A stretch of 64,000 nt of DNA from Octopus bimaculoides. Its lineage: Eukaryota. Both the position numbers and the translations under genes were made by a program. The notes under the pieces are model-generated. The model was not told where the DNA came from. It saw only the letters and a program-made list of their open reading frames with translations, and searched no databases. The first letter of the stretch is position 1; each line of letters opens with the position of its first letter. This document shows positions 1 to 63,713 of this stretch, piece by piece. The stretch covers positions 38,875,444-38,939,443 of the forward strand of contig NC_068984.1 in the NCBI RefSeq assembly GCF_001194135.2, given 5' to 3'.

Positions 1-1303
1 AATACCATAATTTTGAATAAGACTCTGCTTTCTACCTTCATACTCAAAGCAAATTTTTAAGTCTTTTCTTTATTAATTTCACCAATTCTATTTTGAGATG
101 GTAATTTGTCAAAATAAAAGAAGCGGTATCACCTTTAAAAAAAAAAAAAAATCGATCTCCGTGGCAAGAAAACCATTTTCTTAGGCCAACTATGTGACAG
201 TATTGGCATAGACTGGCATTAATTGTTTGATTTTGAAATTTCCTACCATATTTTTTTTTAAATGTCCAGCTTACACTACATTATAAATCTTTAGCCACAG
301 TAATTAGAGAATAGGAGTGATGGTGGGGGAGTCGGAGAGGATAGAAGAAATTATTTGCAGCAGTTGTGAAGTGTAGGCTAGATAAGGAAGCAGAGTATTT
401 TGCAAACGACTTTTGCATGAATTATTTTGCTGGTATGAGCTTGATCAATTAAAGCATTTCAGGGGAGTAACTTGACAGGATTTGCTCCTAACAGCTTGAA
501 ATGTTCACTACACTCATATATTTTTCTGTGGGTTTGTCTCAACTCTTTAGCATTTAAAGTGGCCATATCCAGCCGAAATGTGTGTGCATCACGTACTGTT
601 TTATTGTTTTTAAGATGCTTCGAAATATTGTTGACGAAGGAGTGAATCATATTGAGTATACTTCATTATGGAAATTTTTTTTACGAGTTTCAGGTAGCCC
701 CAGGATGCTTACCACTACAGTAAACTTAATTACTGTTGTAATGAAAGATGGGGTAAATTAATTGTGCATTTCTATGAAAGCAAAGAATGTGTATTTTTGT
801 TTAAATAGGTTTGCTACATGCAGTTTTGGGCATTATATGCCTAGATCCTTGTGTTAGTACAAAGAATTTTGTAATGAATAGACTATCCATTACATTCTTA
901 TTAATAAGGTAGATCTGCAATAGCATATCTTTTTGTGTCTTCTAGTTGAATTGTCTGTATCAGTCTCAATTTAGCTGTCAAACTTTTTTTACACTGAGTG
1001 AATTACACTAAACTTATTCCTCATATTACTGTAAATCATTATTACTAGTTTTATCTCTACTTCAAAATTATTGCTGGTTGGCTCTTGATATGTTGTGCTA
1101 TTTACTAGTTCATGATTTTGTGTGGTTACTGTGATTGCACATCTTCACCGGCAAATAATTTGCATTTGGTGCTGAACTGGCTTTGATTACATTTTTCTTG
1201 AGATGTTATCTATTATGTGAACATGCTGCTTAATTTTGAATAAAAGGTTTTTCTTCTAGGGTGTTGCCACTGAAATTTATTTCTTATATTTATTTGCATA
1301 CAG

Positions 1304-1514
1304 GGTTATGTTTTCCGAATTACGGGTGGAAATGACAAACAAGGCTTTCCCATGAAACAAGGTATCCTGACAGCTGGACGTGTCCGCCTTTTACTCTCTA
1401 AGGGACATTCTTGTTACCGTCCACGACGAGAAGGTGAGAGGCGCAGGAAGTCTGTGCGTGGCTGTATTGTTGATGCCAATTTGAGTGTTTTGAGCTTAAT
1501 TATTATCAAGAAAG
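1304..1514 (+). CDS. RPS6: 40S ribosomal protein S6 (eS6), internal coding exon (first one visible; the ~46 N-terminal codons lie upstream of the window)
   Basis: tttgcatacag acceptor, then [71 protein letters not shown], then gtatgt donor. Near-identical to the eS6 core. Confidence 0.97.
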
Positions 1515-1601
1515 GTATGTATTCCAAGTTTTCTTTCTCTTTCTCTCATTTAAATTTTTCAAGTGTTTGTTGATGGTTCATTTGACTTATTTCTTTTTCA
1601 G

Positions 1602-1760
1602 GTGAGCAGGAAATTCCTGGTCTTACTGATATTACCATCCCACGTCGTCTTGGTCCCAAGAGAGCTGGTAAAATTAGGAAATTGTTTAATCTTTCTAAAG
1701 AAGATGATGTACGAAGATATGTTGTACGTAGACCAATCCCTCTCAAGGAAAACACCAAGC
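1602..1760 (+). CDS. RPS6: eS6 internal coding exon
   Basis: ttctttttcag acceptor; (G)[52 protein letters not shown]; gtaagt donor at 1761; phase 1 at both ends, frame-consistent with neighbouring exons. Confidence 0.96.
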
Positions 1761-1910
1761 GTAAGTATTTTGCTTGCAGTGTTTATGTAATCAGTGTGTA
1801 GCAATTATATACACTACATATTAATTGCCTTTTTAAATGAATTTATGCTTAAATTAAGGTAATAATTCTAATTTTTTTTCTCTCTCTCTCTTTCCCTCTT
1901 CTATTTTCAG

Positions 1911-3829
1911 GTAAGAGCGCACTCTCTAAGGCTCCGAAAATTCAACGATTAGTGACACCTTTAGTGTTGCAAAGAAGGAGACATCTTCGTAGTATGAAGG
2001 CATTGAGATTTGCAAGAAAGCGTGAAGAAGCTGCAGATTATGCTAAGCTTCTGGCTTTGAGAATGAAAGAGCATAAAGAGAGGCGCCGTGAACGAAAACA
2101 ATCATCAATTTCTAAGAGTAGGAGTGAATCACTTGCTAAGGATGCTGCTAAAGTGGCTGCTACTGTTGCTAGTATTCAGAAAAAGCAACAGCCACAGAGT
2201 AAGAAAAGGCCGAGCCCAGGAGATGCCAGTAAAAGTGGTGGCCAGAAATCAGTCCTTCATACTCCTGCTAAGATAGCCAAAGTTTCCAAGCCAGCTCAAG
2301 CAGCAAAGGGTGCTAAGGTTACAAAGCAAGGCAAACCAGCAGCAGGAGCAGGAAAGGCAGCTAAAGGTGTTAAGGGAGTGGCCAAGGGTGCGGCTAAGCC
2401 TGTTAAACCAGCTGTCAAAGCAGCAGCTAAGCTTACTAAAGCTGCTAAAGGTATGACAAAACCAGCTCAGCCAACTAAGAGACCTAAACCTACACAGGAA
2501 GTTGCAGCAGTAGCAGCCAAAAAAGCTAAGCCTGGTAAAGAAGCTCCAAAAGTTTCTGCCAAGGGAGCAGCCAAACCCTCTAAGCAGGCTCAACCAGCTA
2601 AAGCAACCAAACCACCAAAGGTTGTTGGCAAAGGAGTTCAGCCAGGTAAAGCTGCTGGAAAGGCTGCAAAGCAGGCACAGCCTGTTAAAGCTGAAAAGGT
2701 TATTAAGGCAAAAGCTGCTAAGCCAACTCAGGCTGCCAAACCAGCAAAGGGTGTTCAACCTGCAAAAGGTCAGCAAGCTAAGGTAGCAAAGGGTGCTTCG
2801 GCTAAGGCTGCAAAAGGTGTACAGCCCGCAAAGGGGGCTCAACCGGCTAAGGCTGCAAAGCCATCTCAGCCTACTAAAGCTCAACCAGGTAAGGGTGCAA
2901 AAGTGACCCAACCAGGAAAAGCTGCAAAGGTTTCCCAACCTGGTAAAGCTGCTAAAGTATCTCAGCCTGGTAAACCAACGAAGGGAGGTCAGCAAGGTTC
3001 CGGTGCACAGCCAGCTAAACAGGCTCAACCTGCCAAGCAGCAGCAAGCTAAGCCAGCTAAACAGGCACAACCAGGCAAAGGTGCTGCTCAGGTTCAGTCT
3101 AAATCTGCCAAGGGGACAGCACAAGCACAGCCTGTTAAAGCTACTAAACAGCCACAGCAAGCTGCTAAACCGGCAGCAAAACAGTCCCAGCCTAAGCAAG
3201 GTCAAACACCTAAGCAGGGTCAGGCACCAAAGGGTCAGCCTGCTAAACAAGGTCAAACCCCAAAGCAGGCTCAGACTCCTAAGTCAGACAAAGCACCAAA
3301 ACAGGCTCAGACTCCTAAGTCAGACAAAGCACCGAAACAGGCTCAGGCTCCTAAATCAGATAAAGCACCGAAACAGGCCCAGACTCCAAAAACTGATAAG
3401 GCACCAAAACAGGCCCAGGCTCCAAAATCAGATAAAGCTCCAAAACAGGCTCAGGCACCTAAAACAGATAAAGCTCCAAAACAAGCTCAGGCTCCAAAGT
3501 CGGATAAGGCACCTAAACAGGCTCAAACTCCAAAGCAGGGTCAGCCTCAAAAACAAACTCAACCCCAAAAACAAGCCCAGCCAGCTGCTAAGACACCGAA
3601 ACCAGCTCAGGCTGCAAAGCAGACGCAACCTGCTGCGCAGGCCCAGCCAGCTGCCAAATCACCCAAGCCAGCACAAGCTACAAAACAGGCACAACCTGCT
3701 AAACAGGCCCAGCCAGCTGCCAAGTCACCCAAACCGGCTGCAAAGCAGGCTCAATCCCCTAAACCTGCTCAGTCTACACCTAAATCTGCATCTGGCGCTC
3801 AGAAACCTGCTGCAAAGAAACAGAAGTAA
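1911..3829 (+). CDS. RPS6: eS6 terminal exon: canonical C-terminal helix and Ser cluster, then ~560-aa K/A/P/Q-rich extension to TAA
   Basis: Polypyrimidine tract + cag acceptor at 1910; [18 protein letters not shown]...[36 protein letters not shown] matches eS6; the same frame stays open to the stop at 3827-3829. Confidence 0.93.
3263..3514 (+). repeat. Coding tandem repeat, 7 x 36 bp (KQAQ[T/A]PK[S/T]DKAP) within the eS6 tail
   Basis: Seven consecutive 12-codon units read directly from the sequence. Confidence 0.95.
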
Positions 3830-3855: not shown

Positions 3856-3861
3856 AATAAA
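3856..3861 (+). promoter_or_regulatory. Probable polyadenylation signal of RPS6
   Basis: AATAAA about 27 nt after the TAA, followed by T/GT-rich sequence. Confidence 0.6.
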
Positions 3862-9950: not shown

Positions 9951-10535
9951 TCAGTCAGAAACCTTATCAGTTCTATATTTAATATAAGAATAATAAATAT
10001 CAAATCCAAACGATACTGAATTATCAAATAAAACACGAAATTTAAGTGGTATGAAAGCAAAATTAATCACTTGTACTGGAGGCCAAATTAGCCATTCAGA
10101 AAGTAACAAAGTTTTTCCACAGTTTTTGTATTCAGTTAACATTTTGTCAAATGAAGAATTTTCTAGAATTCCTAGTGATGATAAAAATAGAAAAATACCT
10201 ATCGGTGTACCTATAGTTTGGTCAAATAGTAGTTTTTTGGCAACTACACGAACTGAAGAACCTGGGAAAAGATAGTCTATCAGGTGATACCAATAATGGC
10301 TTGGGGGTCCCAATATTAAACCAGTAATACTGATGTGTAGAGTCCGATCTTTGTTCCATGTTTGCTGTCGCTGAATTGAAAGTTCATAGAATTGTTGAAC
10401 AGAATCTCCACCTGCTGCTGATGTTATACTAATGGCTGTATTAGTCAGGAGAAGGTATTTCCGTGAAAACAACAGCTGCACACCGGATACTACTTTATGG
10501 TATATTCTTTTGCGTGCACCAACAAAAACAGTCAT
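9951..10535 (-). CDS. MPV17L2: Mpv17/PMP22-family mitochondrial inner-membrane protein, MPV17L2-like, 194 aa, intronless CDS
   Basis: KYLLLTNT...GDSVQQ...GPPSHYWY..ID..FP....V.KKLLFDQ...W.IWPPVQ.INF.FIP..FRVL..N.VS.G.D.Y.SY.KY aligns by eye with MPV17L2. First ATG at 10535 is preceded by a ttttccag acceptor (exon boundary at 10544); the ORF track start at 10577 is a GTG inside the intron. Confidence 0.88.
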   Translation of the reverse strand: MTVFVGARKRIYHKVVSGVQLLFSRKYLLLTNTAISITSAAGGDSVQQFYELSIQRQQTWNKDRTLHISITGLILGPPSHYWYHLIDYLFPGSSVRVVAKKLLFDQTIGTPIGIFLFLSSLGILENSSFDKMLTEYKNCGKTLLLSEWLIWPPVQVINFAFIPLKFRVLFDNSVSFGFDIYYSYIKYRTDKVSD

Positions 10536-11289
10536 AGTTTCGAACTGGAAAACATAAACAGTTTTGTTTACATTCACAACAGTGATAAAAATTTTAGATC
10601 TGAGTCATCATTTAAAAACTATTTTAAATAATTCATACTAAGAAATTGGTAGTCATTCCAGAAAAAATATATGAACTAGAAATAATAACCAAACCTTCCT
10701 CAACTCCCGTTACATGGTCTTAAAAAAGGACATCAATCATGTAGCCCCAGATACAATCTCTACAAATAGTCGCAACTTGAATGCTTTCTATTTTATAGAT
10801 CTGCCCGATCAAAGCTAAACAATTTAACAATAAAGAGATAAAGGTGACAGTGGGATGGGCAACAGACACATCAATGATAGAGATGCATGATGTGAGGGTA
10901 GAAAACTAATATGGGCGTCAGAGGGGCATGAAGTTATGAAAGAGAACAGTGGTGTAGGTTACACAGCAGGGCAGATATGCATGTGTGTGTGCGTATGGAC
11001 ACAAATATACATAATTTTAACATCCATTTTGTTATGCCTGAGCAGGCAAGTGGGTCAACTGAGTTGATTGGTAATATGCTAGTCAACACGGTCCTTTGAT
11101 ATCTTCTTTGTGAGGTGAGATTTAGATTTGACTTCGCCATGTCACTCACACCTCCCTTAGTCTCCCTCTTCTACAGGTGCCAGTTCTTTGAGCGCACGGC
11201 ACAACTTTATACAACTGTCCTCCTTGCGTGCGGGTGTATACATATACTTATTATGTACATATAAATTCAAATAAGTTATTATCTTTAAA

Positions 11290-11660
11290 ATGCACTGGCA
11301 TGTAGAAAGCACCATTCGAGCATGACTGATGCCAGTGCCACCTGACTAGCACCCGTGCTGGTGGCATGTAGAAAGCACCATTCAAGCGTGACCAATGCCA
11401 GTGCCACCTGACTAGCACCTGTGCTGGTGGCATGTAAAAAGCACTGTTCGATCATGCTCAATCCCTGGGCCACCCGACTGGCTCCTGTACCGGTGGCATG
11501 TAGAAAGTACCCACTACACACTCAGAGTGGTTGGTGTTTAGAAGAGCATCCAGCTGTAGAAACCTTGCCAAATCAGATTGTAGCCTCCTGGCTTGCCAGT
11601 CTTCAATCAAATCATCCAACCCATGCGAGCATGGAAAGAAGATGTTAAATGACGATGATA
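11290..11660 (+). mobile_element. 5'-truncated RTE LINE 3' end (or a SINE sharing it) with 4 tandem 66-bp units
   Basis: tggcatgtagaaagcacc at 11296, 11362, 11428 and 11494, then the family tail ending in (GAT)n. The same tail follows RTE ORF2 at ~25500-25810 and ~41700-42010. Confidence 0.8.
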
Positions 11661-13245: not shown

Positions 13246-13421
13246 NNNNNNNNNNNNNNNNNNNNNNNNNNNNNNNNNNNNNNNNNNNNNNNNNNNNNNN
13301 NNNNNNNNNNNNNNNNNNNNNNNNNNNNNNNNNNNNNNNNNNNNNNNNNNNNNNNNNNNNNNNNNNNNNNNNNNNNNNNNNNNNNNNNNNNNNNNNNNNN
13401 NNNNNNNNNNNNNNNNNNNNN
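13246..13421. other. Assembly gap (176 N)
   Basis: Run of N. Confidence 1.
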
Positions 13422-14698: not shown

Positions 14699-15759
14699 AT
14701 CGACCACTCAAGACTAGCTAGCGCGTTCGGGTCCGCGCTGCTTTAGTAGTACCAAACAACAGAATATAACTTTAAGGTAATTTGGTTGTTGTTTCGAGCG
14801 ATCGCGTGGAGAATCTATCGTTGGCTCGTTATTGTTTTCCAAAAAGGTAACTAACTCTAGTAATTCATCGAGTTATTCTCAGCTTCTCACGTGAAAATTT
14901 TCGTAATATGAGAAATATAATCTCTCAAGTTCGAGTATATGATGCGATTCAAACAATGTTCCTACCTTCTTTCTTGAATATCGAGGTTTCTGTTTTCTTT
15001 TTGTTACATAATGTTGTTTTAACACTAAGAGCTAACATCCGTGTTACTTCCGGTCTCACAGTATAACACCGTATCATTTGTATGGATGGAAATAATGGAA
15101 ATAATTTTAAATAGAAGACACTAATTCCATCCGCAGTCTAGAAATAACTACTGTTCTTATCGATCATACTGCTGTTAGGTAGCTTGTGGAAGTAGTTGTG
15201 GCGGAGGTCGCTCAAGCAAAGGAGGCAAGATAACAAAATGATGACTCGGTAGGATATTCATGAGTAGCTTTTGATTGTTTGAATACCTACGGACTTTTGG
15301 ACCCCTTCTACAGTTAGTGAGCTTGCCTCTTCGTGGTCGCTCGACTTGCTAGAAATACTTGCCAAATCTCCTTTAAACCCGTTATCATCTTATATAAAGG
15401 ACATGGTGCATGCAATAGCTGACATATTCCTACATACACCAAAAAGAATGAGATGATCATGGCTAGAATGCCTTTGATCCACTAGATCAGGATAGTTATG
15501 AGCTAAGATGGTAAGAAGTTAAAATGTGTAGCAACAGAAAGCAATCACAAAAAGCTAACATATTTCTTTAAGGCATATCCAAGTTGCGAACGGAATTAAG
15601 ATAAATGTTTAGTAAAAGCAAATTTTCTCAGATTGACGTTTTTTTAATATATACTTACAGAAGTTGTAAATGATATACTAATAAAATATAGGAGCTTAAA
15701 AAGAAACTAACACCGACAACAGTTACCTTCTACTATCAATATTAAAATATAACTTTGTG

Positions 15760-31831: not shown

Positions 31832-34800
31832 ATCATTATCATCGTTTAACGTCCGTTTTCCATGCTAGCATGAGCTGGATGGTTGGCTGGAGTCTGGGAA
31901 GCCAGGAGGCAGTACCAGGCTCCAGTCTGATCTGGCAGTGTTTCTACAGCTGGATGCCCTTTCTAACACCAACCACTCTGTAAGTGTAGTGGGTGCTTTT
32001 TATGTGCCATTGGCACAGGGGCCAGAGGAGGCTGGCAACGGCCACAATCAGTTGGTGCTTTTTACGTGCCACCGGCCACGTTCGGATGGTGCTTTTTATG
32101 TGCCACTGCACAGGTAACACAACTACAATCTCCATTTTGACGATATACTTGACTCAATAGATTTCCTCAAGCACAGCAGGTCACCCTACGATCCAAAGTA
32201 CTCCTGAATGGGCTGGGGCTGGTTATGCGAAACTGGTGTAGAATACAGCTGTGAACTCACTTTATTTGCCAGACCTTCGCAGTCACAGCATATCTCCAGA
32301 GGTCTCGGTCTTTCGTCATTGCTCTGTGAGGCCCAACGTTTGAAGGTCATGCTTCACTACCTCATCCCATGTCTTCCTGGGTCTACCTCTACTCCAGATT
32401 CCTTCAACTGTTTGGGAGTGGCACATTTTCACACAGCTCTCCATCCATCCATAGTACATGATCATACCAGCGCATACGTCTCTCTTGCACATCACATCCA
32501 ATGCTTTTTATGTCCAACATTTCTCTCAGGGAGCTTACACATCCAGCGGATCATGCTAGCTTTGTTTCTTTCAAGCCTACGCATATCCTCCACAGTCACG
32601 GCCCATGTTTCACTGCCATGAAGCATGGCAGTTCGCATACATGCATCATACAATCAACCTTTCACTGAGCGAGACGCCCTTTGTCACCAGTAGCTTTGCC
32701 CAGGCTATTCTTATTCTAGTGGTAACACTCTCAGAGCATCCACCCCCACTACTAACTTGGTCACCTAGGTAGGAGAAGCTATCAACTACTAGTTTCTTCC
32801 ACTGGAGTGTGATGGAATCTATTTTCTGAGCATCTGTGGTGTTTATTACCCCTGTGCATCTGCTGCACACGAAAGCCATCTTCCTTTGATGTTGCTGCAT
32901 CTCTTATGTCTCCATAGCTTACACTGGGTACATCTTATGGAGTTTCTACCTACACCTTTTCTACAGATCGAGCAGGGCCACCTACTTTAAGGGGTATGTG
33001 ATGTGTTCACCTTCCTACTAACTAGAACTTTGGTCTCTGCAACATTAACTCTAAGGCCCTTCGACTTTAAACCTTGCTTCCAGACATGAAATTTCTTCTC
33101 TAGTTCTGCTATGAGGGCCAGGTCATCAGCATAGAGGAGCTCCCAGGGGCAAACGGTCTTGAATTCCTCTGTTATTGCCTGGAGGACTATGATGAATTAA
33201 AGGGGACTGAGAGTTGGTCCTTGGTGGACCCCTACTTCTACCCAGAATTCTACACTATACTCATTGCCAATCCTAACCTTAACAGCTTCTCTGTATAGGG
33301 CCTGTACAACCCTTATTAACCGTTTGTCAATCCCCAGTTTCTGCATCACCCACCAGATGAGGGATCAGGGGGACCCTGTCAAAGGCTTTCTCCAAGTCCA
33401 CAAAAGCTAAGTATAGGGGTTTATCTTTAGCTAGGTATTTCTCCTGCAGTTGTCGAACAAGGAATATAGCATCAGTGGTGCTTTTACCTGGCACAAAACC
33501 AAACTGCATCTCATCTAAGCAGATTCTCTCCCTAATGAGATGGGCTATGACCATCACCTGATCCAGTAGTTTGATACCCCTGTAATTATATCTATCTAAA
33601 GCATCACCTTTAGCCTTGTAGCAGTTGACTATGGTGCTGCTATGCCAGTCATTGGGTATGACTCCATCATGAACTACCTGGTTTACAATGCGGGTGACTA
33701 GGCCATAGCCCACACCACCAGATATTTTAAGCATCTCAGCAGTGATTCCTGATGGGCCGAGGGCTTTTCCTGGCTTCATACCCTTAATTGCTTTATCTAC
33801 CAGGGATCTGTCTATTCAGATAGCTGGTCCCTCTACCGGGTCGACATTTGGCAGGCTCTCCTCCTATTCATTCTCCACATTCAGCAGTCTTTCATAATGG
33901 CTTCTCCAAGTCTCTTTCTTTTCAGAATCATTAAAAGCAAGTGCACCATCATCCATGCGGACACATTTCTCTCCTGTGACATCACAATTTTCTCTCACAC
34001 ACTGTCTTGCAATCCAAAATACTTCAGTTCTTTGGTTCTCACATCGCTGGACATTGGCAAACTTCTGCACAGCCTTCCCTGCTATCCCCACCCTTCCAGG
34101 CCTGTTTCTTTGCTCTAATGGCTTTGTCTACGGTACTATTCCACCACCACGTAACTCTAGGTCTGGAAGGGACTTTGCACTATCCACAGACTTGGTTTGT
34201 GGCACTCAGCAAGCTGTCCCGTAGGAATTTCCAGCTACCTTCTATGTCCGATGTCTGTATTTCCTCCTCCCTCTCACCAAATTTCTTGATGAGGATGTCC
34301 CTAAATCTCTGACCATGTGAAGGGTTCTTTAACTTACAAATCCTTCCTTTCTGGATTGGTCTGCTTCTTGGTATCCTTTGGGCCTCGAGCCTAAAGTCAC
34401 TAATGACTAGCCTATGCTTGGGGGTACATTCTTCACCCAGGAGGGTCTTTGTATTTAAGAGTAAGCCTGCGTCCCGCTGTCTGGTGAGGATGAAATCAAT
34501 CTAGCTAGCAGAGTCACCTGATTGATAGGTTATCAGGTGGCTGTCTGGTTTCCTGAAGTTAGTGTTGCAGATTAAAAGGTTACATGCATCACAGAACTCC
34601 AGTAGCCTAGTTCCCTCATCGTTTCAGGAACCAATACCATGGCCTCCGTGTACACCAGTGAAGATACCGGATTGCCGCCCAACATGTCCATTAAAATCTC
34701 CAGCCACAAAGATGAGGTCATTGCCACTCGTCTTTGAAGTAGCCTGTAGAAGGGTATCATAAAATGGCCCTTCTGACCATTTTGTAGGTCCGCTTGTGGG

Positions 34801-40771: not shown

Positions 40772-40781
40772 NNNNNNNNNN
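40772..40781. other. Assembly gap (10 N) with duplicated flank
   Basis: The sequence after the gap (ggatagcaaatttaggatct + T run) duplicates 40527-40558. Confidence 0.95.
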
Positions 40782-46500: not shown

Positions 46501-46744
46501 TCTTCTTGCCATGCCTGAACAATTTAGATGGTTTATTAGGGTCAAAAACAGATCTTATTAGAGATACACAGGTTTATTATTGAGAGAATGGTATGAGAGA
46601 GAGACTAGCAGAGACAGTATTGGACAAGGGGGTTATATGTCAGTTTTCAGTATTTTTGAAATGGGGGTGGAACAAATAGGTATTACATATTTTTTATATA
46701 AAAAGAGTTTTCAACAACATTACACTCATAAACCAAAGCTTTCT

Positions 46745-47830
46745 ATTTTGGGAGCTGTAGCAGACAATGGAGCCCTCTCCACAGAGACATTAATAGAAAG
46801 TGGAGTGCCTCAGGGAACTGTATTAGGGCCACTACTGTTCATGGTGACTCTTTCGGACAAATCATCAGTTACACAGATAGCCATACTTACTAGCTATGCC
46901 AACGACACAAAAGTAGTACAAGCAGTCAAGGAACCTTCTGATGCTAATCTTCTACAGAAAGACCTAGATGCCATATATAAATGGGCTAAGGACAACAACA
47001 TGCAATTTAATGCAGACAAATTCCAAGCATTCCGCTACCAGCTAATTAGTGCTCAGAAGTCACAACAACAATACTTTGGACCAAAAGGAGTGGAAATCCT
47101 AGAATCACATACAGTGCATGATCTTGGGATTTATATGAGCAACGATGCCTCGTTTCACATGCATGTCACCAAGATGGTGATAGTGTGCAGGTGAATTGCC
47201 AGATTGATTCTGAGAACCTTCAGAACAAGGGACCAGGAAACTATGGTGGTCCTATGGAAGACATTTGTCCTTAGCTGTCTGGACTACTGCTCTCAACTAT
47301 GGTCACCCTACATTGTAGGATTAATAGCAGAACTCAAGGCGGTTCAGCAATACTACATGAGGAAAATTGCATCAATGGAACAGCTGAGCTACTCGGAAAG
47401 ACTAAAAGAGTTACAACTACTCCCTGGAGCGAAGACAGGAGAGATACACAGTGATAGATACTGAAGGGGCTGGCACCAAACTTTGTAATCGTGAGTTATA
47501 CCAGACCTTGAAATAGACGTCACTGCACTGTTCCAAAAGTCTCAGCTGTCTCATCTAGGATGAGGACCATGTACTGCAATAGCTTGGAATTCAAAGGCTC
47601 ACAGCTACTTAACTCTTTGCCAAAACATCTGAGGGACCTCCATGGAGTGGGAGTAGATGTTTTCAAGAAACTGGACCTCTTACTATCTAAGATCCCAGAT
47701 AAACCAATATCAAGGCAGGAAACTCAAAAGAGGGCAGCAATATTGAACTCCCTCCGTCAAAAGCTAAACCCATTGAACTGGCCAATTTAAAGGTGATTAC
47801 AATAGCGGTGTCACAGCCTCAAGGCTGAAA
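46745..47830 (+). mobile_element. CR1/L2-group LINE RT and 3' end, degenerate
   Basis: SGVPQGTVLGPLLF...YANDTK...LQKDLDAIYKWAKDNNMQFN.DK; LRTF.TRD......LWKTFV.S.LDYCSQLWSPY...LSY.ERLKEL. Confidence 0.88.
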
Positions 47831-62491: not shown

Positions 62492-63713
62492 GGTTATAAA
62501 TACTAAAATAATGGTAGTAGACAAATATAATTTTAATGTAACATTTATTACAACAGAAACATTTACCACTCAATATGGCTGCTCTTTTGGGCAATTACTG
62601 CCTCCACACAAGAACAAAATTTTTTGCAGCTGCTGCAACCTCTGCCTTTTTGATTTTGCATGTCACACACATGGTGCAAGTCTTCAAACTGTTGACACTC
62701 AAGTGTGGTGAAACATTGGTCCTTGCATGAAGTACACCCCATAAAAAGTAATCGAGAAAGTTGAGATCTGTGCTATTTCTGGGCCAGATGTTGGCCCTCA
62801 CAAAAAATGGCATCTCACCAAGGAAAGCCTGTGTTGCTTTTGACCCATGGTATGGTACAGAATCCTGGATAAGTACCATATTGTCAAGCCCAAACTTGTG
62901 CTCCATCCAAGGTAACAGAGAGTTCTTCAGGATGTCCAGATACTCCTTTATGCCAATCTTAAAGCCAGACTCAATGAAGTGCTGGTCCATGATACTTCCA
63001 TCACTTGCCACAGCTCCACATACCATTACTAAGACAGGATTCTTAGTCTCAAACACAGTGGGGGTGGTGTCAGAAGGGTTGTATGCGATCACTCAAGAAT
63101 TTCTGTGATTCACCTCAGCATCTACAGTGAACTTTTTCTCATCCACAAACATGAGAGTTTTTTATGCACCTTGATGCTTGATGAATGACAGAAGCTTTCA
63201 GCATCTCTCAGCTCTGATTGCTTTGGCCTTGGCTGTTACGAGGTGACAGCATCATCGAACATACCTAGTCATGCTAAGGTTCCTATTCACAGCTCTAGAC
63301 ACTATGGGAAAGAACACATTGCATTTCTTTTCAAGATGTGTTGGCTTCAATTGAGCATTTGAGGCCAGCAAGAAACTTTGGATTGTGTTTGGAATCACTT
63401 TGAGTCTTGTGTTCTTTTCTATCAATCTTTTCCTCTTCTTTAAATTGTTTATACACATGATAAACTGTTGCTTTTGGAAGTTTCACTAACATAGCAATTT
63501 TATTGGCAATGTGCCTGGCACACACCAAAACAACAATGGTAGAATGATTCTGTTGTTCCATGACTTTCTGTTGTCGAATCAGTATGCCTTTTACCTGAAA
63601 AATAAAGAGAAGGATTAGATTTTCAAACAAGTAGGGTTTTGTCAAAAAATGAAACATTAAATTCACTAAGTCACTGCTAAAAATTGGTCTCAATTTATCT
63701 ACAAGACCCTGTA
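62487..63713 (-). mobile_element. Degenerate Tc1/mariner-superfamily transposon, DD37D (maT)-like
   Basis: FVDEKKFTVD...N.RN; VMV.GAVASDG...; QDSVPYH.SK.TQ.FL...IWP.NS.DLN.LDY.LW (36 residues between the 2nd and 3rd Asp); N-terminal HTH-like segment at ~63330-63560. The right end reads TA-CAGGGT (rc at 63706-63713); the left end is only weakly similar. Confidence 0.82.

Follow-up and report, generated by a model that had tools for sequence, protein, structure and literature searches.

An octopus ribosomal protein eS6 carrying a translated, lysine-rich C-terminal tail of 562 residues

The stretch analysed here, called the window throughout, comprises 64,000 nucleotides (nt) of the Octopus bimaculoides genome (contig NC_068984.1), and close to its beginning it holds the RPS6 gene (CM046604.1) for ribosomal protein eS6, whose last exon runs beyond the canonical end of the protein into a tail of 562 codons. 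Three exons are visible, and their translation yields 762 residues, 200 of core and 562 of tail. No N-terminal eS6 exon was found in positions 1-1303, hence the gene start lies upstream of the window, and the 46 N-terminal residues encoded there were taken from chain HH of PDB entry 9EHO (residues 1-261 used). With them the full octopus eS6 measures 808 residues and 85.0 kDa, with an isoelectric point (pI) of 11.0. The locus had been singled out from its letters alone in what we call the original prediction, which described 762 amino acids (aa) in the visible exons and about 800 in total, a frame left open for 562 codons past the canonical eS6 end at ~2140, a tail of little else than K, A, P, Q, G, V, T and S, with neither aromatic residues nor Cys, and an end in ...KKQK followed by AATAAA. 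Exon assembly and translation confirm the open frame and the length, the composition count agrees, and the stop and the signal stand where they were placed. The parts of the gene, all on the forward strand, are the following:

1304-1514, forward strand: first eS6 core exon visible in the window, coding residues 47-116 and the first base of codon 117 (AG/GT borders, frame)
1602-1760, forward strand: eS6 core exon (AG/GT borders; phase-1 junction with the last exon, following ...NTKR)
1911-3829, forward strand: last eS6 exon, core and tail (AG/GT borders, compatible phases)
1911-2140, forward strand: core part of the last exon, with the eS6 C-terminal helix and the serine cluster (76/76 residues the same in O. 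sinensis)
2087-2131, forward strand: canonical eS6 phospho-serine cluster with RxRxxS motif, residues 229-243 (motif scan)
2141-3826, forward strand: low-complexity K/A/Q/P-rich tail of 562 codons, residues 247-808 (no stop, codon periodicity, selection, 9EHO match)
3827-3829, forward strand: TAA stop codon (same stop and near-identical 3' untranslated region, UTR, in O. vulgaris)
3856-3861, forward strand: AATAAA polyadenylation signal, 27 nt past the stop (conserved in O. vulgaris)

The core is that of an ordinary eS6. It matches Pfam PF01092 (Ribosomal_S6e) with an E value of 6.8e-36 and 123 bits against a cut-off of 26, the match spanning only profile positions 46-125 since the first exons are outside the window, and it scores about 360 bits against eS6 chains of solved structures in the PDB, those of human and rabbit among them. 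Towards its end it shows the order of elements that typifies the class, namely a predicted C-terminal helix and then a serine cluster with the RxRxxS motif, a predicted kinase site; in eS6 this cluster is the established target of S6 kinase (background in PMC548281). The canonical core end (...SRSESLAK) falls at nt 2140, where there is no stop, so that the serine cluster of octopus eS6 is internal instead of C-terminal. Between 1911 and 3950 AATAAA or ATTAAA occurs a single time, at 3856. Rfam and tRNA scans of the window gave no matches.

The tail consists of A (24 %), K (22 %), Q (16 %), P (13.5 %) and G (7 %) in the main, and lacks F, W, Y, C and N altogether. It has 124 K+R for 12 D+E, a net charge of about +112, and weighs 56.5 kDa on its own. 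It is built largely from tandem units of 9 to 22 codons, of which Tandem Repeats Finder delimits three arrays:

2882-2974, forward strand: 27-nt unit, 3.4 copies, QPGKAAKVS units (also from the translation)
3260-3534, forward strand: 36-nt unit, 7.6 copies, coding PKQAQ(T/A)PK(S/T)DKA
3569-3739, forward strand: 66-nt unit, 2.6 copies

The lysines stand isolated and are spaced by threes, with lags of 3, 6, 9 and 12 enriched (z 3.7-5.6) and lags of 1, 2, 4 and 5 depleted, and there are only 4 KK doublets and 1 S/TPxK motif. A charge-hydropathy plot puts the tail on the disordered side of the boundary, and AlphaFold2, run on the single sequence and hence weak evidence, gives one long helix formed by the last-exon portion of the core together with ~15 residues of the tail (predicted local distance difference test score, pLDDT, 76-90) and leaves the remaining ~540 tail residues below 50 and devoid of secondary structure. 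The tail is thus predicted to be intrinsically disordered. A consensus splice-donor-like site, CAG/GTAAGG, is located inside it at 2887 (codons P-G-K); the O. vulgaris transcript is unspliced there.

That transcript, the paralarval de novo contig Cluster-58773.138646 in the supplement of a tandem mass tag (TMT) proteome of O. vulgaris skin mucus (PMC11431876), carries a single open reading frame (ORF) from nt 30 to 2399, which encodes 789 aa (82.7 kDa, pI 11.02), starts MKLNISYPATGCQK and spans core and tail as far as ...KKQK. Early termination or splicing had been raised as a possibility in the original prediction, and the transcript displays neither, being one 789-codon ORF that is unspliced across the tail. 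Its product was identified with 16 peptides and 27 peptide-spectrum matches, at 20 % coverage and with core peptides included (PMC11431876). Tail peptides, the detection of which had also been suggested, are present as well: four of them were reported in two O. vulgaris proteomes (PMC10138644, PMC11431876), all graded 'High, Unambiguous', and all four are identical in the O. bimaculoides window sequence, at these places:

2153-2182, forward strand: tail peptide, residues 251-260 (tandem mass spectrometry, O. vulgaris, PMC10138644 supplement)
2480-2521, forward strand: tail peptide, residues 360-373 (tandem mass spectrometry, O. vulgaris, PMC10138644 supplement)
3746-3817, forward strand: two adjacent tail peptides, residues 782-805 (tandem mass spectrometry, O. 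vulgaris, PMC11431876 supplement)

The two distal peptides correspond to positions 763-775 and 776-786 of the 789-aa ORF and end 3 residues before the C-terminus (KQK). Since the tail peptides extend from near its start to near its end, the frame is translated from start to end; the long eS6 is transcribed, and translated as one protein to its end. The TMT ratios of the two C-terminal peptides, 0.59/1.59/0.95 and 0.48/1.55/0.74, compared with 0.67/1.75/1.17 for the whole protein, tentatively suggest that the tail follows the rest of the molecule. The O. vulgaris ink proteome held no matching eS6-tail peptides, and neither of the two proteome papers (PMC11431876, PMC10138644) discusses a long eS6. 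Near the C-terminus the mass-spectrometric peptide and the paralarval transcript agree with O. bimaculoides and the O. vulgaris genome assembly encodes SASGTQKPAAK, a mismatch between genome and transcript that polymorphism, RNA editing or a difference in assembly could explain.

Coding statistics lead to the same picture. In the tail region T is rare and other frames are also open, for 285 and 335 codons, hence the tail frame needs a matched control. This was provided by 2000 dinucleotide-preserving shuffles of the tail, which contain 21.7 in-frame stops on average and 9 at the minimum, versus 0 in the real tail. Base usage is strongly periodic, with T at 4, 5.5 and 31.5 % and C at 30, 46 and 7 % of the first, second and third codon positions, respectively, and the AT-rich third positions follow the same bias as those of the core exons. 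Within the 36-nt array, the seven 12-codon copies (PKQAQxPKxDKA) vary at 13 columns, 11 of them third, 2 first and 0 second positions; all 11 third-position variants are synonymous and the two first-position changes are T/A and S/T, which indicates that the copies drifted in their DNA while the peptide was kept.

Orthologous loci in other Octopus species were reached through the neighbouring Mpv17-like 2 gene (Mpv17l2). The O. bimaculoides locus retrieved by the same route (GCA_001194135.2) overlaps the window by 26,482 bases and matches it at every one of them. On the opposite strand beside it, the annotations place eS6 products of 808 aa in O. bimaculoides, 786 aa in O. sinensis and 786 aa in O. 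vulgaris, and tblastn identifies all three as long eS6. A stop at the canonical position in relatives, which might have betrayed an artefact, is found in neither O. sinensis nor O. vulgaris. Over 503 aligned tail codons, O. bimaculoides and O. vulgaris are 94.8 % identical in DNA, with a synonymous divergence (dS) of 0.154 and a nonsynonymous divergence (dN) of 0.025, that is, a dN/dS ratio (omega) of 0.16, and an alignment blind to codons places four indels (3, 12, 39 and 12 nt), none of which shifts the frame. The comparison with O. sinensis (540 codons) results in dS 0.165, dN 0.026 and omega 0.155 (Fisher p 3e-17), the indels likewise being all in frame. A copy-number difference of 13 codons with respect to both species sits in the 36-nt repeat (3260-3534). 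For the core part of the last exon, where the comparison is with O. sinensis, the O. vulgaris locus stopping 37 codons into the tail, 76 codons give dS 0.20, dN 0 and omega 0. The flanking non-coding DNA is only 76-92 % identical, and most of its aligned blocks are interrupted by a gap every 50-120 bp.

The constraint is not evenly distributed, as omega (versus O. sinensis) is 0.37 for the first 224 tail codons and only 0.06-0.11 for the distal 338. Nor is it evenly distributed over residues: all 119 aligned tail lysines are conserved, with 29 substitutions hitting A, V, T, S, P, Q and I, an outcome with P ~7e-4 under a crude model in which substitutions are proportional to residue frequency. 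Taken together, the comparisons among the three species indicate that selection keeps the frame open and preserves every aligned lysine as well as the general composition, and that repeats are gained and lost in frame only.

The long octopus sequence is already public and annotated. The proteome tables name the UniProt entries A0A0L8FU76 ('40S ribosomal protein S6', OCBIM_22007935mg) and A0A6P7S8P2 (LOC115210314) for it, and a database gene record lists the 808-aa product without a Pfam match. Searching PDB sequences with the tail retrieves one real match, chain HH of 9EHO, 'Small ribosomal subunit protein eS6', of 808 residues, which is identical to the window over all aligned residues, 215 of the core and the 562 of the tail (residues 247-808); the next-largest eS6 chain there has 306 residues. 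The entry describes the O. bimaculoides ribosome and comes from Mitra et al. (bioRxiv 2026, PMC13321053), a study whose subject is a break in helix 88 (H88) of the 28S rRNA. It also reports that octopus ribosomes are ~30 % slower than those of squid or slug independently of the H88 break, and leaves the cause unexplained (PMC13321053). We found no description of an octopus eS6 tail in the literature searched, where it apparently has gone undescribed.

The best characterized counterpart is the lysine-rich extension of mosquito RPS6, which the original prediction had put at about 100 aa, as holds for Aedes, Anopheles having ~170 aa; it is contiguous in the last exon, its resemblance to histone H1 is considered convergent, and RPS6 isolated from mosquito ribosomal subunits keeps it (PMC548281; the extension is also noted in PMC11764897). 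The octopus and mosquito tails are alike in following the serine cluster directly, in the last exon with no intervening intron, in their K/A-rich low complexity, with a net charge of +0.20 per residue in both octopus and Anopheles, and in diverging much faster than the core. They differ in length, the 562 aa of octopus being 3-5 times longer, in Q (16 % in octopus versus 3 % in Anopheles) and D/E (2 % versus 14 %), and in the lysines, isolated at a period of 3 in octopus whereas Anopheles has KK doublets. Moreover, retention on the subunit has been demonstrated for the mosquito tail, whereas the octopus tail is known here from sequence, transcript and mucus peptides.

Named gastropod, bivalve and chiton eS6 proteins have mostly 238-262 aa and no tail, one Lymnaea model reaching 300 aa, and tails are likewise missing from most insects. 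This distribution points to an independent gain in octopus, which agrees with the earlier proposal of an independent and much longer expansion in a cephalopod. Judged from these sequences, the octopus tail is a convergent analogue of the dipteran one and not its homologue.

The nearest relative that we could find is a pair of polyadenylated Tara Oceans transcripts, P0122 and P0123 (389 and 388 aa; ERR1712168, JGI 3300018952), with a short 3' UTR. In tblastn P0122 aligns to window positions 1301-2158; its core is 79 % identical to that of octopus and has 8 derived residues in common with it when set against 20 named molluscs, and its tail starts at the same junction, SESLA(A)KDAAK. Unlike the octopus tail, that of P0122 is ~128 aa long, A/K-rich with 2 % Q, and the two are unalignable (E = 15). 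P0122 is probably from another cephalopod, and if so a shorter tail would predate the octopus expansion. In Argonauta hians, no eS6 is present up to 10 kb from Mpv17l2.

K/A/P-rich tails also occur on the eS6 proteins of Cacopsylla (427 aa in all) and Trichinella (440 aa in all) and on those of environmental transcripts (P0116, P0045, P0040, P0005). These tails and further ones (P0042, P0009, P0019) are 90-250 aa long and, where measured, carry a charge of ~0.15-0.25 per residue; P0045 even has its lysines at a period of 3, like octopus. Unlike octopus, they have under half its length and are low in Q, and we found no study devoted to any of them. Among the eS6 sequences compared, the octopus extension is by far the longest genuine one, the next having ~250 aa, and tails of this kind look like a recurrent convergent gain of which octopus is the extreme. 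It should be noted that low-complexity candidates dominated the homologue search when all 762 aa were used as query, and that most 'long eS6' matches were fused gene models. Homology searches of protein collections, in which the exact 808-aa sequence is absent, returned no cephalopod eS6, the long octopus form included, and a metagenome scan with a clade-specific C-terminal alignment only distant eS6 genes and generic patterns.

The label 'H1-like', given to the tail in the original prediction, stands as a loose description of composition and fails as a statement of homology. Pfam at E <= 0.01 recognises PF01092 only and no Linker_histone winged-helix domain, and no H1 is among the matches of the tail in the PDB at E <= 1. 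Among 1.84 billion representative proteins the tail has 110 matches, none of which reaches beyond the 12-residue repeat region. All 11 that were inspected proved to be unrelated repeat proteins, and 0/110 carry an eS6 core motif; nothing thus points to capture of the tail from another gene. H1 homology was rejected on the lack of an H1 match in all three collections. H1 tails contain ~40 % K, unlike the octopus tail, which has 22 % and is Q-rich. What is shared with the H1 C-terminal domain, and with the extensions of Drosophila RpL22 and RpL23a, is the type of sequence, basic, K/A/P-rich, disordered and nucleic-acid-binding, so that as far as sequence comparison goes 'H1-like' names a composition only. 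Ribosomal proteins with such H1-like tails are a known theme (PMC548281, PMC11764897).

The reading that we favour, with a probability of roughly 0.6, is that the long eS6 is made as one protein and that the tail is kept on the 40S subunit as a disordered polycationic arm. The tail would remain attached to eS6 on the mature subunit like the shorter mosquito tail, a retention suggested by that precedent and by the weak co-variation of the TMT ratios of tail and whole protein. Predicted to be disordered, and polycationic with a net charge of about +112 and single lysines set 3 or 6 residues apart, it may project from the end of the eS6 C-terminal helix, a site that published 40S structures place at the base of the subunit on its solvent side. 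From this position it could bind RNA and other polyanions non-specifically, possible partners being rRNA expansion segments, mRNA, neighbouring ribosomes and granule components.

Several points weigh against this reading. The proximal 224 tail codons are less constrained (omega 0.37), and the tail cannot be aligned with that of P0122, the nearest relative found; together these two suggest that what is constrained is composition and charge, rather than a particular sequence. The peptides come from skin mucus and not from ribosome preparations, and the database records give the longest product per gene only, so that a short isoform may exist beside it. Lastly, the authors of the octopus ribosome paper describe the overall architecture as conserved and refer to eS6, RPS6 or an extension neither in the text nor in the supplement (PMC13321053), and the reference sequence of a PDB entry does not tell which residues are present or modelled in the particle.

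Some ribosomal proteins, eS31 and eL40, are synthesised as fusions and then cleaved, and the octopus tail might similarly be translated but absent from the working ribosome, being clipped at import or assembly, or released, to serve as a cationic polypeptide of the mucus or as a nuclear or nucleolar polycation. We regard this as unlikely. All protein evidence does come from skin mucus, peptides cut from the lysine-rich histone H1 are known to act as antimicrobials in the skin secretions of fish (cited in PMC7551771), and nothing unusual was seen at eS6 in the octopus ribosome (PMC13321053), although a disordered tail would be invisible to cryo-electron microscopy (cryo-EM) anyway. Core peptides, however, were found in the same samples as those of the tail (16 peptides, 20 % coverage in all), with tail ratios that track the whole protein; the junction has no evident processing motif, the predicted helix continuing ~15 residues into the tail, and the mosquito tail is retained on subunits.

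The tail may instead be a tolerated, essentially functionless repeat expansion, which stays open only because frameshifts and stops would harm an essential mRNA or protein. Its growth by tandem duplication, with repeat copy numbers that differ between species, would fit, as would the failure to align it with its closest relative, the omega of 0.37 in the proximal part and the repeated appearance of K/A/P-rich eS6 tails in many lineages, which suggests that they are easily gained. Mere tolerance, however, agrees poorly with an omega of ~0.06-0.11 over the distal 338 codons and 0.16 overall, with 0/119 lysines lost while 29 other residues changed, or with repeat copies that diverged at synonymous sites and not in protein; and tails of independent origin have nearly the same charge density (0.15-0.25 per residue), as though a property were under selection. 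Hence we consider a functionless tail distinctly unlikely.

Highly unlikely, in turn, is that octopus ribosomes draw their eS6 mainly from a short isoform or from a further gene copy, the long form being minor. The donor-like CAG/GTAAGG at 2887 could serve such an isoform, only the longest product per gene is on record, and partial transcript clusters exist beside the full one. Yet stop codons are absent at and around the canonical end, the first poly(A) signal comes only at 3856, the tail is left unspliced in the full-length transcript, the authors of 9EHO assigned the 808-aa sequence to eS6, and purifying selection extends over the whole tail. That the feature is an artefact of assembly or annotation, or a 3' UTR that does not code and is open by chance, can practically be dismissed, for although T is rare and other frames are open too (285 and 335 codons), the same ORF recurs in three independent assemblies, and the shuffle test, the codon periodicity, an omega of 0.16, the in-frame indels and the transcript and peptide evidence already refute it.

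Returning to a tail that stays on the 40S subunit, a bolder version would make it a functional, lineage-specific addition that alters how the ribosome behaves, either by tethering it (to RNA granules, cytoskeleton or membranes) for transport and for local translation in the very large nervous system of octopus or by contributing to the ~30 % slower translation, and that perhaps expanded together with the H88 rRNA innovation in incirrate octopuses; we find this improbable. The case is nevertheless of interest in several respects. Classically eS6 is a signalling target on the ribosome, and in octopus its phospho-serine cluster precedes a tail of twice the mass of eS6 itself; unlike most low-complexity oddities, this one is backed by transcript, peptide and selection evidence. 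Since ribosome purification, in vitro translation and cryo-EM maps exist for O. bimaculoides, the role of lysine-rich ribosomal tails is directly testable there. If the tail is on the subunit, each ribosome would carry ~+112 extra charges, which could affect mRNA recruitment, the packing and transport of ribosomes, and comparative work on octopus translation; if it is a tolerated expansion, it would still be a clean case of selection on a charge pattern and not on a sequence.

A final point concerns the neighbourhood of the gene. The Mpv17-like protein 2 gene, of the Mpv17/PMP22 family, occupies a single-exon ORF at 9951-10577 on the reverse strand (gene at 9951-10535) and is convergent with RPS6, the 3' ends being 6.1 kb apart. 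Its product shares 94 % identity with Mpv17-2 of O. vulgaris and 79 % with the Argonauta hians protein, and a possible 5' exon, indicated by short matches to the N-terminally extended part of the O. vulgaris model, lies at ~14991-15078 on the reverse strand, ~4.5 kb upstream. A tandem repeat of 66 nt in 3.3 copies (11296-11511) is a member of a dispersed family that recurs many times in the orthologous locus of O. vulgaris. Assembly gaps (runs of N) are found at 13246-13421 (176 bases) and 40772-40781 (10 bases), and the 50 bases just before the window start are also N. Elsewhere in the window, 33327-33779 (reverse), 46580-47194 (forward) and 62595-63092 (reverse) hold two RVT_1 reverse-transcriptase fragments and a weak DDE_3 transposase fragment, which are decayed mobile elements typical of the repeat-rich octopus genome.

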